Shown: positions 28,206-48,661 of the stretch, in pieces
Layout of the letters: each line of letters opens with the position of its first letter
How positions within the stretch are numbered: the stretch's first letter is position 1
NCBI GenBank assembly: GCA_964057225.1
Contig: OZ059895.1
Span: 5,518,001-5,582,000, forward strand
Source of the DNA: Auanema rhodensis
Taxonomy: Eukaryota > Animalia > Nematoda
Direction: 5' to 3'
Length of the DNA: 64,000 nt
Program-made: the position numbers and the translations under genes
The notes under the pieces: generated by a model
Seen by the model: the letters and a program-made list of their open reading frames with translations, nothing else
Database searches by the model: none
Told to the model about the DNA's origin: nothing

Positions 28206-31200
28206 ATGTCTGCCTTTTTAAATGAGATTCTTGGTAGAGCAGAAAAACTATCATCAGCCAACTATCAAGAGGATATAAATCATGTAGTTGTGAATGCTTC
28301 TACAGGAAGGCAGCAGCCTGCGACGAAGAAAAATGTATTAGTAATTGAAAATGTATTGTTTTCTTACTTTTTTTTAAGGTACCTCTTTTCGCTGGAGGAA
28401 GCTCTGAAATTGATTTAGCTAGTATATTCCGCGCCAGTGAAAACTTATGGAGTAAAGCTGATTCTAACAACATAAAAGTTGGCATTAATTATAAGAGTAA
28501 AATAATAAAAATTTGTTACAGAAAGATTTTCTTTTTGGGGACAAAGGTGTTGTATTTGGAATTAATGCTCCTGAACTCAGCAGTACATTTTGTGAAAGAG
28601 CTGTCGAAGAAGAGGATGAAGATGTGCATATTTATATTCATTAATATTTTTTAAAGGTTTTATGGTTTTAGGTTGATGCCGATATTCAAAGAATAAGAGT
28701 AGAAGCCGAAAGAGCCTTCTTCAATCATGTTCTTCTCTCAAAGCCTCAGACTGCGTTATCTTCTGCTGCTGCAGTTCAAAAGCAAAACGTAGTTTTAAAG
28801 TTGATCTCCATATCAGACATTTATTTATATAGATCAAGAATGCTGGTTCAAATGATTTTCGACTAATTCCTAACTCTGCTACTTCGAGAAGAGAATTACT
28901 GTTTGGTGATAAAGTTCGCAAATATATTCGAAGTGGAAAAAGAGTGAGTTTAAATGTTTAAGGCAAGAATTTTACACTACTGTTTCAGAAAGATGTTTGT
29001 GAACTTCTCAACAGTGTAAATGAGGATCCATCTACTGATAGTGTTCTTGTTGATATCTGGGGTGAGGCCGCAGCTATGATGACGAAAAAACTTTCGGAAA
29101 ATAGAGATGAAAATTCGGTATCTCGATTCTTTGTGGAGAATGCTTGTAATTTTTTGCATAGACAGTAAGTAATATGAAGCTTTTGTTATTCATGTATTTA
29201 CTGCTAGATATATTCAACACATGAGCGACAAAGTTGAAAGGAATTTGGAGATTGCCCAGCGTGGAGGTATTCCCGGAACCAAAGGTCTAGTTGAAGCTTT
29301 CTTAAAGGTACTTTTATTTATGAAAAACTGTGTCCCTTATGAAGAAGTTTTTTAGATTGCCCCTGATGATCCAAATGCTGAAGATGGCGTTATAAAGGGA
29401 CTTCCTGTCTGGGAGGTATGAAGTTGAGATAATTGTTTTCCAGGATTTGTTAATTTTTCAGGTTACATACCATTGCTTTAGAGCAGGTGAACTTTCTGCT
29501 GCAGCTGATGCTCTAAATCAACTTAACAATTGTCCTCAATCTGCGTGCCTAGTCCAATCTTTGCATCACCTGGATAAGTACAATAAGTGTGTTTACCTTG
29601 AGAAGTTTTATTAAATATTTTCTTCCCCACAGATTGGATGCTGAACTTAAGAAAAAGGTTAAAGTAGAGTGGAGACATAACATGAACAACATTCGTGATA
29701 AGTACAAAAGAGCACTGTATGCCGCTATTTTAGGAACAGGTGCGTGCATAATTGCACTTTTTCTAATATGCACATTTTCTTTTAGAGTCCCCTCTAGCAG
29801 ATTCTCTAGAAAACTGGCTTTGGTTCCAGTTGATTCCCCTTCATATTGATCCTCATATGACTACTACTTTGTTTACGGAAGTTCAGAAGACGATATCTAT
29901 CGATTACGGTATTTTTTTTATAATTCCTTGATTATCTGAATTCTGAAATTGTAGGGGAGGATTATTTCATGAGAAGTGGAGAATTTCATTATTATTTCAC
30001 AGTTTTATGGCTTAGTTCTCAATTTGAGAAAGCTATTGAGGTTATTTGTTATTATTTTTCCTACAAATTATAATTTTTCAGCTTCTCACCAATAACAATC
30101 ATATTTTGGAAGCTGTCCACTTGGCTATTTTAGGAAACGAGCTTGGATACATTAGATGTTGCTCCGATTCTTCTGCTCCTCTTGGTTTCTGAGATTTTTT
30201 TACAATAATTAATGTTTATTCATTTAGTGGTTACGGATCCTTTACAGCCTACCGTTTGCTCATTAAACATCCCTCGACTTGTTGTAACATATACCAAAGA
30301 ATTTGAACTAACTGACCCTACTCGAGCAATGGATTACTTTTTTTTGGTTAAGGTACTTTATTTCAATATATTTCCTGTCAACATTTTAAATTATAGGGAT
30401 TCAAAACTCCAAGTGGATCTGACGTTTTTGAAAAATCTGTTAGTAGATCTGTTTATCTGTGCAATAGTAGAGAGGAAATTGATACTGTTGTTGGTACTTT
30501 TGATAATAGTGGAAATAGGACTCGAGGTCTTATTGATGAGTATGTTACTTAATATTTTTGAAATTCTTTCCAAAAAATTTTTTAGATATGTTGAGGATGC
30601 TACTCCTATTATCGAGAGTATCGCTTTTGATACCGAAACTAGTGGAAGCACATTGGAAGCCCTTCGCCTCTATCTGTTAGCAAATCGTCCATCCAAAGCC
30701 GTGAATTTGCTATCTTCCGAAATTAGTACTGCTCTCAGGTGAATAAAAACATTGTTGTTCTAGTATAGAAAGATTGGTTTCAGATGTGAACGCAATGACC
30801 TGTTGGCTTTAAGAGATGTTGCTGTAGAGTTCTGGCCTTGTATTATTTTAAAGTCATATTTTTTTATCATCAGCATTTTTTAGTGTTGGGTCGGGCTTCA
30901 GCCAGTGATTATTCAGAGCTTGCAATTCTTGTGGATCTTATAAAGATATTTGGTGCTTGCTCCAAAAGTAATGCAGAAGAAGCTTATAAGTATTTTTATA
31001 TAATTTTTATTATTTTTTTAAAATGTTTTCTTAGATGGTCTCAAGAATTGAGGTTGTTACCCGTGGAAGCCGAGGGTGTTGCTGTTGCTGGCGATGAATT
31101 CCATTTAGTGCCTCAACGTGTAAGTGGATTATCGATATTTTAAATTAACTTTAAAAATAAATGAAAATGATTTTAGGTGCGTGAAGTTATTCCCGACTAT

Positions 31201-35428: not shown

Positions 35429-35727
35429 AAGAAGGCGCTCCATCGCCAAAAATGTAAAAAGACCGCCAACGTTAAAATTTTTGATTCTATGTATTTGAGA
35501 GGTTCAACAATTTTTTGTTATTTTTCTGTATTCTTAACTTTATGGGTTATATTTATTGGTATTCATTTCACTTAGAGCTATTAGATATATTACTTGCCCA
35601 GAAATCTTTTTTTTTGCGATTGTGTCAGATATTTTAACAGAAACAATAAATTTGAGTTGAAAATATTTCTCTTGGACTGCTAAGTACATATTTGTTTTCA
35701 GTTATTGAAACATTAAAACAATACGAC

Positions 35728-38351
35728 ATGATTATGCAACATGATGAACGGTTTGCAATAATAATAAAAATTAAAATGAACTAGAGAATTTAGGGAGAAT
35801 AATCCCGATCTAATTCAGGAATTGAAAAAAAGTAGACTTAGATTGAAGTATAACTGGGAAAATTTATTCAAGAAATATGAGAATATTAAGGAAAGTGGAA
35901 TTGAAGTGAGTCTTTGTTGAACCTAAATAAAGAAAAGATTTCCAACATAGATTCAACTGGATACTTTTGAAGTATTTGCTCCAGAAGGAATGGATCGACG
36001 AACAGTTACCAAAGAAGTTGAAAAACATGAGTTTCTTGGATCTCAATTTGGGTATTGTTTTATTAAGTTCATACTTATTTGTTTTGTATCAGGACTTCGG
36101 CATTAGCTGCTCCCTGCAATGATGTTGAATCTTTAGAAGGTTGCCATCCGAAGGTTATTGCTAAATGTCGTAAGATGGACAAGGTGATTAAAACTAACGT
36201 TTTAATGAATACATTATGTTTTACAGGAATTTTCGAAAATTCACCAAGTGTTAGCAGTGGTACCACATAGGCAAAAGTTATGGAAGAAGCCAGTTAGACC
36301 GAAGAAGATTATTATACGAAAAACTATAAGGGTTAGCTTTATAAACTCAGCCTTTATAACACATAGTAAATGTTTAGGAAGATATAATAGCAGTAGATAA
36401 AAAATCGCTTGGTTTTCGTCCGATTGGTATTGCTTAGGAGTTTAATTTTAATGATATAATTTATTTATTCAGTTGCTATTGATGATGGGATGACTGATGG
36501 CCCTGTTCCTCAGCACATTCAATCAGCTTTACGTAAGATTTTTCTTGTATTATTTTTTTTTTATTGTTCAATTTACATAGAACTCCTTGTTCCTTATACT
36601 TATGAAAGTCATCTTTTTTGTACTATATGCTATTTAGAATCTGAACCTAAAAGACAAATAGTTTGTCCACCGTCTTCACAAATCCCTTTTCCCGCTGTGG
36701 CTCTCAAGAATGGATTAGAGGACGGTCCAATATCTTCCACAATGTGTATTGCTGGTAAAGATATTTTATGTTATTTTTCTTCATGGTATTGTTATCAGAA
36801 TCAAAACGAAGATCTTTGCCTGTTAGCTTGATGGGTTTAGGTTTGTGTAATAGTACATAATTGCATGTCTTATTCAACTATAGGTTGTTCAGGAGTGAAG
36901 TCTCCTTCTTTCAACTTTAAATCTGCTGTTCATCCTATGTTGACAAACGGTCTTTCGGATGGACCTATTGAAACAAATTTAATGACTGATGAACTCTGTT
37001 ATCAGCCGGAGGAAATGCCGGACGACACAAAAGAAGATGGACCTATTGTAGAATTTCCTTCCTCGCAATCAATTATTGTAAATGACGGACTTTGTGACGG
37101 TCCTCTTGAATTATCCCAGTCATCGCAATCATTTGATGATAATGAAGGATTAGATGTCGCTACGATATCGTCTCAGGAAGACACATATCACGATGTCGTC
37201 TCTGGACGACACAGCTCACATCCTTCAATAATGTTTAAGAATGGCTTAGAGGACGGTCCTGTTTCTATAAATCAGAGTCTAGATCGTATTATAAATTTAT
37301 GTATTAAATTTCTAAATAAACTTTTCAGAATTTTCTGTAAACGATGAGCCTTATTCTCGTGACTCATCTTCTGAACCAAATGTGGCCAAAGACGACTCTG
37401 TTTTGATTCCTGCGGTTCGAAGAACTGAAACCACTGAAGAATATTGTCAAAATCTAACTCTCAACACAAATGTACAAAGCTTTTTTACTCAAAATAGTTC
37501 TCAAAATAGTTCTCCTGTAAGTAGCATGTTCGTGGTTGTATTGATTGTCATGATTCAGATGCCTCGTGGCAGCAATTTTTCTATAGCAGTGCCGTCTCCA
37601 GATGATTCAACAGTGAGTTTAGATCTTAATCATCGGGAGAAATGCTTATTTGACAATATTTTCAATGCTTTAGTGTTCGCCTTCTCGTTTTGTTGTCGCA
37701 GCTGAAAAGATAGAGTCGACGCATTTTACTATGCCGACTCCTCATGTGGAACAGTCAAAGTTTCAAAGTTGCTCTTTTCTGCATAATGTAATTTTTATAT
37801 AGAAAAAGTATCAAGCGAAGTTCCACAGAAAGTGGTGTTGATATGATTGGTGCTAAGAAACCAAAAAGGTAAGTTAATTGCTTTTATTCAATCGTATAGA
37901 AATATTTAAAGAGACATACTTGATGCTAATACTGGTCAACCCGGAGAAGAAAATGATGGCCTTGCTCAAGATATTAGTATTTTAGAATATTCAACTGAAA
38001 TTAATAACTTTTGGATGGAACTAGTATGTTATAATATATTTTCCATGTTCCATCATTTATTTTCAGTTGTTTGATGATATTTCACGAGAAATTAACAAGT
38101 CAAGTTGTAAACCGCGACACTTTTTAGGAATAAAAATGACTGAACTGTTAGGTGATCAAACTCTTATTACTAATTGGGTTAATTATTCTAAAAATGGCAT
38201 AGAAGAGTAAGTAATGTTTTGAAAGTATGAATATACTTGGCTCTTTAGAATCACTGATGGTCAAGATTATGTGGCGAGAGAAGAACGACGTTTGTACTGC
38301 AGTGCTAGAAGGAGAAACAGTTTCATGGTCCGAGGGTATTCTGCTCTTTGA
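35728..38351 (+). CDS. Uncharacterised multi-exon protein with an N-terminal Scm3/HJURP-like CENP-A-binding domain and (N/D)G(L/M)xDGP repeats
   Basis: TTTTCAG acceptor at 35695-35701; exons 35728-35750, 35794-35905, 35951-36051, 36093-36183, 36228-36332 and onward splice in phase to MIMQHDERENNPDLIQELKKSRLRLKYNWENLFKKYENIKESGIEIQLDTFEVFAPEGMDRR..., a basic KKPVRPKK segment, an acidic/Ser-rich repeat region and a last exon ending SFMVRGYSAL* (38351). The gene itself is well supported; the HJURP/Scm3 assignment is by manual alignment. Confidence 0.75.
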
Positions 38352-38705: not shown

Positions 38706-41700
38706 ATGACTTGGAATCTTAATGCAAGTCTACCAGCGATTGTTGGATCAGAAGTAAGTTCTTAAAATATATATGATTTCAACAATAATTTGTCATAGTG
38801 TGGGATTGACATCGGAACAGCTGATAAATTAATGGAATTGTACGAAGATGGAAATGAGGTTTCAATTATGTCTTGAACGAATTTTGTGTAGTGAGAATAC
38901 TTAGGTTGCCTATGTAGCACGATACCGTGGTGATGCACATAAGGGGTTGTCGTGTCCAGTTTTGCGATCTACATTTGAAACATACCTAAAAATCAAGTAA
39001 TTTTGTTGTTTATTTATATCTAATCCGGTATAAACAGAGATTTGAATAAGAAGGTAGAGAAAGCTCTACAAACTGTACAGTCTAAGATTAATAATGACAA
39101 TGAGAGAAAATATGCTGTTCAACGCTTGCGGGAAGCTCGTGATGTTAAAGATGTCTCGGAAATAACACAAGCATTGATGTCAGGAAGAAAAACTAAAGCT
39201 GATAAAGCCAGGTTTAATACTAATGTTGTTGATGAAATGTAAATCTTTGGCTTTTAGGGAGCTAGGCCTTTCCAAAGTTGCGGATGCTATATTAGATAAA
39301 CTTCATATATCTGTGGTAAAATATGTGGATAAGAAAAATCCTGGTAATATTATGAGAAATTGATTTTTTAAATGTTCATTTATCTGTGATTTTCTTTTAG
39401 AACTTGCTGATATTGAGAAAGTCAACGAACATTTAGTATACTGCTTATCTGATGCTATTAATCGTCTTCCAGAAACTATCGATTATGGCAAAGATATGTA
39501 TGCTTTTCAAGTTTCTATATTTTAATGTTTTTGATTATTCAGAAGTAGCCTGAAAAATCCGTCGGCTCGTATATCAGTTAGGTGTGAATTATCTAATAAA
39601 GCTAAGAAATGGACAGAGAATGATCGAGAATTTCATTTAATTAAACACTTCGAAGCTTATACAGATTTTAAACGGGATGCTAGTCGGGTTCAAGGTTACC
39701 AAGTTAGTCAATATTTTAGCTTCTATTCTCATGATTTTTCTAAGATATTGGCTATGGAACGAGGTGATGAGAAAGGTGCATTATCTTGGAAAATAGAAAT
39801 TGGTTCTGATCTAAAGCGCTCACATCCAGCTTCAAAAATCAGGTCTGTTGAAATAGTTTCAAATATTTGAAGTCAGCTCAAATTTCATTCAGGGTTCTTC
39901 CAGAGCATGTTCAACTCTTTAACACTGCCCTGGATGATTCTATTAATCGCTTACTTATTCCAAAAATTCAACGTTCTATTAAGTATTTTAACTTACTGTA
40001 TCTGATATTTATCTCTATTTACAGACGACTGCTAAAGTCGCAAGCTGAGGCGGAAGCTATTGCATGTTTTTCTGCAAACTTAGTTCAGCTTTTTGCTCAA
40101 GAAGGGTTATCTGATAACTATGTGATTGCTCTTGATCCTGGCTTTGGAGCATGCAAGTCAGCATATTTAACGGACACTGGTTATTAGTTTCTTTATGAAT
40201 TCCAATATATATAATGGTTATATCTAGGAGCTGTAATTGAGACAACGGAATTTCATCTGCGAGGTACTATGTTTGATAAAAAGGGACAAGATACTCTTAT
40301 GCGATGGGTGAAAGTTTGTAAGCATAAAGTTGTTGTCGCTATTGGTAATGGTACTGCTTCAACTGAAACTCAAAAAGCTGTTGCTGAAATGATCAGGAAG
40401 CGACAATTTGGCTCGAAAGATATTCGCTTTTGGTTTGTAGATTTATAGTAACTTATTACGAACTATTTGCTTGCATATGTAAAGTGTTGTGACAGAAAAT
40501 GGAGCTTCCAAATATAGTATCACACCATTAGCAGAGACAGAGCTTCCCAACATGCCTATAACGCAGAAAAGTGCAGGTTTTTAATATTAATTTGCTCTTC
40601 ATCTTGTCGATAATTTTAGTGTCTATTGGCAGACGTTTATTGAATCCTATGGCAGAATATGTCAAAATTGAGCCAAAACACTTAGGTTTGGGAATGTATC
40701 AAGTATGTTATTACAATTATTTTTCCATAAAATAATATATTAAGCATTCGGTTAATGAAAAGAAATTGAGTGATATATTAGAACTTGTTGTCCGAGAATG
40801 TGTATCACTTCGAGGAGTCAACATCAACAGTGCTTCGTTTCATTTGTTACAGTAAGTATTTCACATAATCTTACTTCTATGAATATAAAATTAATTAATT
40901 AATATGAAACTTCAAACTAGAAAATTTCATGTAAACTATGTTTGACCTTTTTTTTCTATATTTATGTCTGACCAAACGGCTCATTTTCAAAATGGCGTTA
41001 TGGAATTATACTTTCTTTTTTTCCAGACAAATCTGCGGATTGAATAAGAAAACATCTGAAGGAATCGTAGCTTACAGAAACAAGAATGGTCACTTCACTT
41101 CGAGATTCCAGTTAAAAGATATCCCAGGATTGGGCCCTAAGTCTTTTGAGCAGTGTGCTGGTAGAACAATTACTAAGTTTTGCCCACTTTTCTACAACTT
41201 ACAGGTTTCCTTACTATATCTCCGCCAAATGACAGTAGCGAGAGTAAAGTTTCAAATGCCAAGCGGAGAAAACTCGATTATAATCCTTTAGATGGAACAA
41301 CAGTTCATCCAATGCATTATGATGTCGCAAAAAAGTTTACTATTTTATGAAAATTTAATAGAGCTTTCACGTTCCAGACTTTTGAAGCGTTGCAATATCA
41401 ATCTTGAAAATAGCATAAGCTTATCACCGAAGCAAATTAGTGATTTGAAATCTTTTCAGGTTTCAAACGGTCTTCAGGTTGTTAGATTGATTACAGTTCT
41501 TTAGAATCCATCATCGGATGAACAACTTGTTATTGAGTTGCTTACGGAACCTTCAAAAACAATTCCTCCACCTCCTTTGCTAACAGAAGTTCGTTCAACT
41601 TCTTCCCTTCAAATAGGAGAAACAATGTTTGGGCGGGTTCAAAATCAAGTTGCATTTGGAGTGTTTGTTGACATTGGGGCAGAATGTAATGCATTGGCTC

Positions 41701-41870
41701 ATAAGTCTTCATTAACAGAGCCATTTCCAGAGGTGATAACTCTAATAGAAAGTCGTACATTTTCATTTCAGGTTGGAACACAACTGCTTGTTAAAATAGT
41801 ATCTGTAGATGTTCCACGAAAACGCATCAACATATCACCCGTTTCAGTTAGTCATTTTTCTTTACGTTAG
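38706..41870 (+). CDS. S1 RNA-binding domain protein 1 (SRBD1/Tex family)
   Basis: GNEVAYVARYRG, YQILAMERG, VIALDPGFGACK (YqgF/RNase H-like), [50 protein letters not shown], HhH GLGPKSFEQCAGF, NPLDGTTVHP and a C-terminal S1 domain (FGVFVDIG). Confidence 0.94.

Positions 41871-46026: not shown

Positions 46027-48661
<2,635 letters not shown>

Follow-up and report, generated by a model that had tools for sequence, protein, structure and literature searches.

Does a nematode encode a dedicated chaperone for CENP-A of the HJURP/Scm3 kind, and can it be recognised from sequence? The question is raised by a stretch of 64,000 nucleotides from Auanema rhodensis (assembly GCA_964057225.1, contig OZ059895.1, positions 5,518,001 to 5,582,000 of the forward strand), which we call the window and whose own coordinates are used throughout. 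An earlier note, made from the letters of the window, had proposed that three small exons near its middle hide the N-terminus of such a chaperone. These exons open a gene of 17 exons and 16 introns on the plus strand (35728-38351) that encodes 616 residues. With high probability, judged from its sequence, this gene is an expressed, correctly spliced orthologue of HJURP/Scm3, called NEFR-1 in nematodes, and its product a CENP-A/H4 chaperone by homology. That nematodes possess HJURP was reported by Hollis et al. (Sci Adv 2026; PMC13322267; preprint March 2026), and their results bear on the reading of the window gene at several points below.

A predicted Scm3 domain at the N-terminus

The N-terminal 78 residues of the protein match the Pfam Scm3 family (PF10384) with 34 bits, compared with a gathering score of 24.3 (E=2.3e-8), and the match, residues 15-62, corresponds to positions 2-50 of the 53 in the profile. 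The resemblance to Scm3/HJURP that the earlier note had drawn by hand is thus above chance, being over the curated cut-off. The profile check that it had proposed gives a match above the gathering score both in the window protein and in its orthologue from Auanema sp. JU1783, whose N-terminus passes with 27.4-31.1 bits. These scores support the assignment of the window N-terminus to the Scm3 family. Within the domain, a long amphipathic helix runs up to a KY pair (residues 35-36), after which acidic residues alternate with short hydrophobic ones (IEIQLDTFEV); in the literature these features count as diagnostic. The residues after KY, E-N-I-K-E-S-G-I-E-I-Q-L-D-T-F-E-V, align column for column with human HJURP chain 3r45_C and Scm3 chain 2yfv_C. 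The 14 identities in 48 positions that had been counted by hand to human HJURP agree with the HMMER alignment to 3r45_C; the 11 in 30 to S. cerevisiae Scm3 are a right count for the sequence as quoted, and K. lactis 2yfv_C aligns likewise.

A search of the single sequence against chains from solved structures placed 2yfv_C (K. lactis Scm3), 3r45_C (human HJURP) and 2l5a_A (a S. cerevisiae Cse4-Scm3-H4 fusion) among its top four matches, each weak at E 0.05-0.1 and on the same level as a spectrin chain. With a two-species profile, 3r45_C came first (E=0.0047) and 2yfv_C third (E=0.0099), a DnaI chain standing second. Language-model features gave two Scm3 families as the two nearest clusters at low scores, which we take as a lead only. 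Such scores bear on the idea that Scm3 is matched by chance, through a charged amphipathic helix in a disordered protein unrelated to the family. The helix is rich in lysine and glutamate, and the spectrin and DnaI chains score like the single Scm3/HJURP chains. However, the Pfam score lies 10 bits over the curated cut-off, the match extends over 49 of the 53 positions in the profile, and the JU1783 orthologue passes independently. The KY pair and the strand pattern also stand at the expected positions, and the domain's place at the N-terminus of a lengthy, polar protein is the one seen in the Scm3 family. We consider a chance resemblance very unlikely.

Transcription and splicing of the Scm3 frame

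Contigs of the HJURP transcript from four RNA runs of one organism show zero base differences from the window. They skip 35751-35793, 35906-35950 and 36052-36092 (joints 35750/35794, 35905/35951 and 36051/36093), and 12 additional intron joints are listed downstream; ambiguous joints were refined to GT..AG sites, and GT..AG was checked for all 15 listed. Intron 9 (36841-36883), which has no listed joint, was placed from the ends of contig pieces together with a reading of the sequence. Exons 1-3 measure 23, 112 and 101 nucleotides, and the first two introns, of 43 and 45 nucleotides, both run from GT to AG. The three exons, their coordinates, the two introns and the N-terminal peptide are exactly as the earlier note had claimed, with the joints seen in all four runs. 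Confirmation of the splicing by RNA, which had been proposed as a check, was likewise obtained: the transcripts splice so that the Scm3 frame stays open over 616 codons. Across the joined exons the open frame is 1851 nucleotides long and ends in a TGA stop at 38349-38351 (Table 1). No minus-strand open reading frame of at least 70 residues was found beneath the gene.

Exon 10 has tandem 3' splice sites 9 nucleotides apart (CTATAG/GTTGTTCAG/G). Use of the acceptor at 36893 drops 36884-36892 and yields an in-frame isoform shorter by three residues. The first acceptor appears in the contigs of runs X1 and X4 (pieces from 36881) and the second in those of X2 and X3 (pieces from 36891), and the offsets in the records match.

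The open frame could still belong to a transcript that was mis-assembled or is not translated, such as one running on from the upstream gene, and the domain would then never be made. Only ~35-40 nucleotides separate the end of the upstream gene from the transcript's 5' end, with one contig extending back to 35670. But an identical, fully spliced and intact frame of 616 codons occurs in four runs, the first ATG past an acceptor-like site opens it, and a second species conserves both the frame and its ends. That acceptor-like site, TTTTCAG at 35695-35701, adjoins the ~35700 start of three of the contigs. A transcript of this kind is in our judgement extremely improbable, and we continue with the gene as an expressed and correctly spliced one.

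Table 1. Features of the predicted HJURP/Scm3 orthologue gene, in window coordinates
Feature	Position	Strand	Basis
5' untranslated region	35670-35727	+	RNA contigs; three begin ~35700, one reaches 35670
Coding exons 1-6	35728-35750, 35794-35905, 35951-36051, 36093-36183, 36227-36331, 36378-36426	+	RNA contig joints, GT..AG
Coding exons 7-12	36473-36532, 36638-36754, 36799-36840, 36884-37285, 37329-37516, 37559-37612	+	RNA contigs
Coding exons 13-17	37674-37759, 37803-37868, 37912-38023, 38067-38206, 38249-38351	+	RNA contigs
3' untranslated region	38352 to at least 38437	+	contig pieces
Predicted Scm3 domain, residues 15-62	35813-36001, interrupted by 45-nucleotide intron 35906-35950	+	Pfam PF10384
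Basic patch, residues 126-144, KLWKKPVRPKKIIIRKTIR	36275-36331	+	read from translation; partly conserved in JU1783
Disordered middle with six (N/D)G(L/M)xDGP-type motifs	36481-37275	+	motif count
Second basic patch (residues 478-498) and conserved KR(S/T)STES	37803-37868	+	alignment with JU1783
Conserved C-terminal module, residues ~500-616	37912-38351	+	alignment with JU1783

An orthologue in Auanema sp. JU1783

Relatives were sought with exon 2 alone (37 residues) among 1.84 billion representative proteins. The sole convincing match (P0001), 86% identical over exon 2, is entitled 'unnamed protein product [Auanema sp. JU1783]' and carries a precomputed Scm3 match. The other three matches (P0002-P0004) are repetitive proteins with several matches to one short acidic/hydrophobic stretch, and were set aside as composition matches. 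By BLASTP, the full-length window protein aligns to P0001 with E=6e-80, and the window gene and the JU1783 protein are orthologues. Identity amounts to 88% in the Scm3 stretch, 83% over residues 1-78, 68% over residues 79-145 and 38% in the tail, where more than 200 window residues are left unaligned and the C-terminal 116 residues are 40% identical. An identity of 88% in the Scm3 domain as against 38% in the tail is the pattern expected of a protein whose constrained functional core is this domain. The elements follow one another in the same order in both proteins: Scm3 domain, CHPK..CRKMDKEF, basic patch, DGP motifs, KR(S/T)STES and DGQDYV..RRRNSF.

The public JU1783 protein, which has 1146 residues, is an annotation fusion of two genes (L001 5611-10831, GCA_943334845.2); the Auanema protein is cited as CAI4225225/CAI4225445.1 in PMC13322267. 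The JU1783 HJURP frame ends in ...NSFLARGSAV-stop, with the stop at L001 7346-7348, and its native part comprises about 404 residues. The ATG that opens a Tex/SRBD1-like gene follows at L001 7666, and the fused model splices across the HJURP stop to reach that gene. Word-indexed homologue searches, which require common five-residue words and a length window, returned no further relatives for JU1783 residues 1-445, for the full entry limited to 1-445 or for residues 1-402 (E up to 10). The window's own protein is also missing from the results of these searches, which suggests that the collection searched does not include the window gene. It is apparently a new, unannotated orthologue of a known kind.

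Tail, repeated motifs and C-terminal module

Serine, glutamate, aspartate, lysine and proline are among the commonest residues in the tail of the 616-residue protein. Searches of the tail in exon-wise pieces (E up to 1) matched no Pfam family, and JU1783 residues 1-402 matched Scm3 only. A long low-complexity tail with a basic patch had been described in the earlier note, and both are present. The patch, at residues 126-144, may act as a nuclear localisation signal or in binding DNA. Neither the KR(S/T)STES block beside the second basic patch nor the DGQDYV..RRRNSF block near the C-terminus could be assigned to a known family.

Right after the Scm3 domain, at 36094-36183, lies a SLEGCHPK..KCRKMDKEF block that is conserved with JU1783. 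A weak match near LEGCHPK to the N-terminal, zinc-binding domain of bacterial DnaI (E=0.006) was judged to be probably chance, the first cysteine not being conserved in JU1783.

The disordered middle of the protein contains DGP six times (starts at 36496, 36721, 36958, 37036, 37096 and 37252), compared with 0.15 expected by composition, and at least six were obtained in none of 20,000 shuffles. The JU1783 orthologue has two such motifs, at equivalent positions, as opposed to the six of the window protein. DGP may be a short linear motif whose copy number changes fast. In the C-terminal module, the best-kept block covers residues 584-612 (38250-38336; DGQDYV-x-REERRL...ARRRNSF) and is 72% identical to JU1783; an AlphaFold2 monomer of the JU1783 module was of low confidence, with a predicted local distance difference test score (pLDDT) of 55. 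The RRRNSF motif would fit a basophilic-kinase consensus. A feature search with the module returned only SPT6/Tex clusters at low score, probably bleed-through from the Tex-like part that is fused to it in the database entry.

Hollis et al., 2026 (PMC13322267) make no mention of the DGP array or the RRRNSF module. We put forward tentatively, as a possibility that is on balance doubtful, that the DGP array and the DGQDYV..RRRNSF module are the parts of nematode HJURP that target it to centromeres and regulate it. If so, the DGP units might dock a loading factor, for example KNL-2/Mis18BP1, CENP-C or LIN-53, and RRRNSF might act as a switch for a basophilic kinase of the Aurora or PKA type. Both elements could be starting points for studying the chromatin targeting of nematode HJURP.

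A putative CENP-A/H4 chaperone

In the complexes 3R45, 2YFV and 2L5A, the Scm3 helix runs antiparallel to CENP-A's alpha-2 helix (CATD), and the KY pair together with the following strand completes the CENP-A/H4 interface. The CENP-A/H4 dimer is held as a soluble pre-nucleosomal complex until deposition. By homology, the Scm3 domain of the window protein (residues 15-62) would lay its long helix along the CENP-A alpha-2 helix (CATD), and its KY motif and acidic/hydrophobic strand would pair with the CENP-A/H4 dimer, which would be kept soluble and off DNA until deposition at the centromere. The remainder would be a fast-evolving disordered tail whose basic patches may serve in nuclear import or DNA contact. 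Its DGP motifs and C-terminal module would most likely contribute to centromeric chromatin targeting and cell-cycle control, by analogy with the non-Scm3 parts of HJURP and CAL1. We infer that the window protein binds CENP-A/H4 and loads CENP-A as NEFR-1 does.

Three results count against this picture. Single Scm3/HJURP chains are matched weakly (E 0.005-0.25), at scores similar to those of the unrelated spectrin and DnaI chains. An AlphaFold2 monomer of the JU1783 Scm3 region, with a helix at 5-39 and a strand at 48-51, is unreliable, its mean pLDDT being 42. The sequence link from Auanema to NEFR-1 was not reproduced by the word-indexed searches and is taken from PMC13322267.

The gene might also be a true descendant of Scm3 whose main job in this lineage is something other than CENP-A deposition, either as chaperone of another H3 variant or in the neurofilament-like role in axonal transport that was at first reported for C. 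elegans TAG-63/NEFR-1. The link to HJURP is confined to a 48-residue domain, the tail and C-terminus being without a known family, and NEFR-1 was earlier described as neurofilament-like, according to a work cited in PMC13322267. However, conservation in the protein is highest in the Scm3 stretch. In C. elegans, NEFR-1 is essential, and embryos obtained after its depletion from the germline lack CENP-A(HCP-3) on their chromatin and show catastrophic segregation; NEFR-1 colocalises and co-purifies with CENP-A, and in vitro it binds HCP-3/H4 directly and better than H3/H4 (Hollis et al., 2026). Moreover, loss of HJURP parallels loss of CENP-A across opisthokonts (Hollis et al., 2026). A main role apart from CENP-A deposition is therefore unlikely in our view, and an HJURP/Scm3 orthologue acting as a CENP-A/H4 chaperone is by far the more probable identity of the window gene.

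Gene neighbourhood

A Tex/SRBD1-like gene lies downstream of HJURP both in the window and in JU1783. In the window it occupies ~38884-41864 on the same strand, about 500 nucleotides past the HJURP stop, and has HHH_3 and S1 domains. Upstream of HJURP in the window is a gene for a DAO-type FAD (flavin adenine dinucleotide) dehydrogenase, whose transcript contigs end at 35662-35665, 12-15 nucleotides past an AATAAA (35645-35650). The spacing around HJURP is operon-like and compatible with an operon and trans-splicing. Farther upstream, an exon at 30212-30742 (+) matches Nup93/Nic96 (Pfam PF04097, E=3e-11) and points to a nucleoporin gene upstream of the dehydrogenase gene. On the minus strand, a C2H2 zinc-finger gene at 46027-47532 stands in a GC-rich patch (46% compared with ~32%). 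Since a zinc-finger gene also occurs at the equivalent downstream minus-strand place in JU1783, the gene order common to the two species extends beyond HJURP. An Rfam scan of the whole window gave no match.

Comparison with NEFR-1 and other Scm3-family chaperones

In the work of Hollis et al., hidden Markov models of Scm3 missed C. elegans but caught the protein of Auanema sp. JU1783, and C. elegans nefr-1 was then reached from that protein by iterative BLAST, with PSI-BLAST at E=7e-19 after iteration. They termed the Auanema gene an unannotated stepping stone and found that nematode HJURP orthologues track the species tree (PMC13322267). The earlier note had suggested that the apparent absence of HJURP from nematodes could be a failure of detection and had left open whether recent surveys already list such a gene. 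Detection failure is the conclusion of Hollis et al., and the gene is listed there, as a kind and for the sister species JU1783 (PMC13322267). The evidence supports the inference of the note as right but already published. The major point, that nematodes were wrongly thought to be without a dedicated CENP-A chaperone, was made in 2026 with C. elegans genetics and biochemistry (PMC13322267). To this the window adds an RNA-verified, unfused HJURP gene model from the Auanema clade, and evidence that the Scm3 domain of this clade is canonical enough for a direct Pfam match.

Among the known systems, human HJURP (3R45 chain C) and yeast Scm3 (2YFV chain C and 2L5A) resemble the window protein in a gapless alignment of ~45-50 residues that takes in L-x-Q-x-L, SR-x-R, KY and the following strand, although identity to human HJURP in the domain is only ~29%. 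The vertebrate repeats HJURP_mid (PF12346) and HJURP_C (PF12347) gave no match in the window tail or in JU1783 residues 1-402; vertebrate HJURP thus differs in having parts that lack a counterpart here, and the Scm3 domain alone is common. Drosophila CAL1 is described as a diverged chaperone of the Scm3-domain type whose C-terminal module is conserved and binds CENP-C (PMC13322267); it is alike in general layout, no sequence similarity having been tested or seen.

The validated nematode HJURP is C. elegans NEFR-1 (NP_491161.2), which we compare from its description in PMC13322267 and not from a sequence alignment. The Caenorhabditis domain goes undetected by Scm3 hidden Markov models and lies farther from the N-terminus (construct residues 68-196), whereas the window domain passes Pfam directly and starts at residue 15. 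The neighbouring gene in C. elegans is msh-6, in contrast to the DAO-type dehydrogenase and Tex-like genes of the window. The likenesses are an Scm3 domain in which KY and an alternation of acidic and hydrophobic residues occur, and a C-terminal motif, conserved in Caenorhabditis NEFR-1, with little conservation between the two (PMC13322267). In each species, too, the gene belongs to a compact cluster of same-strand genes or an operon.

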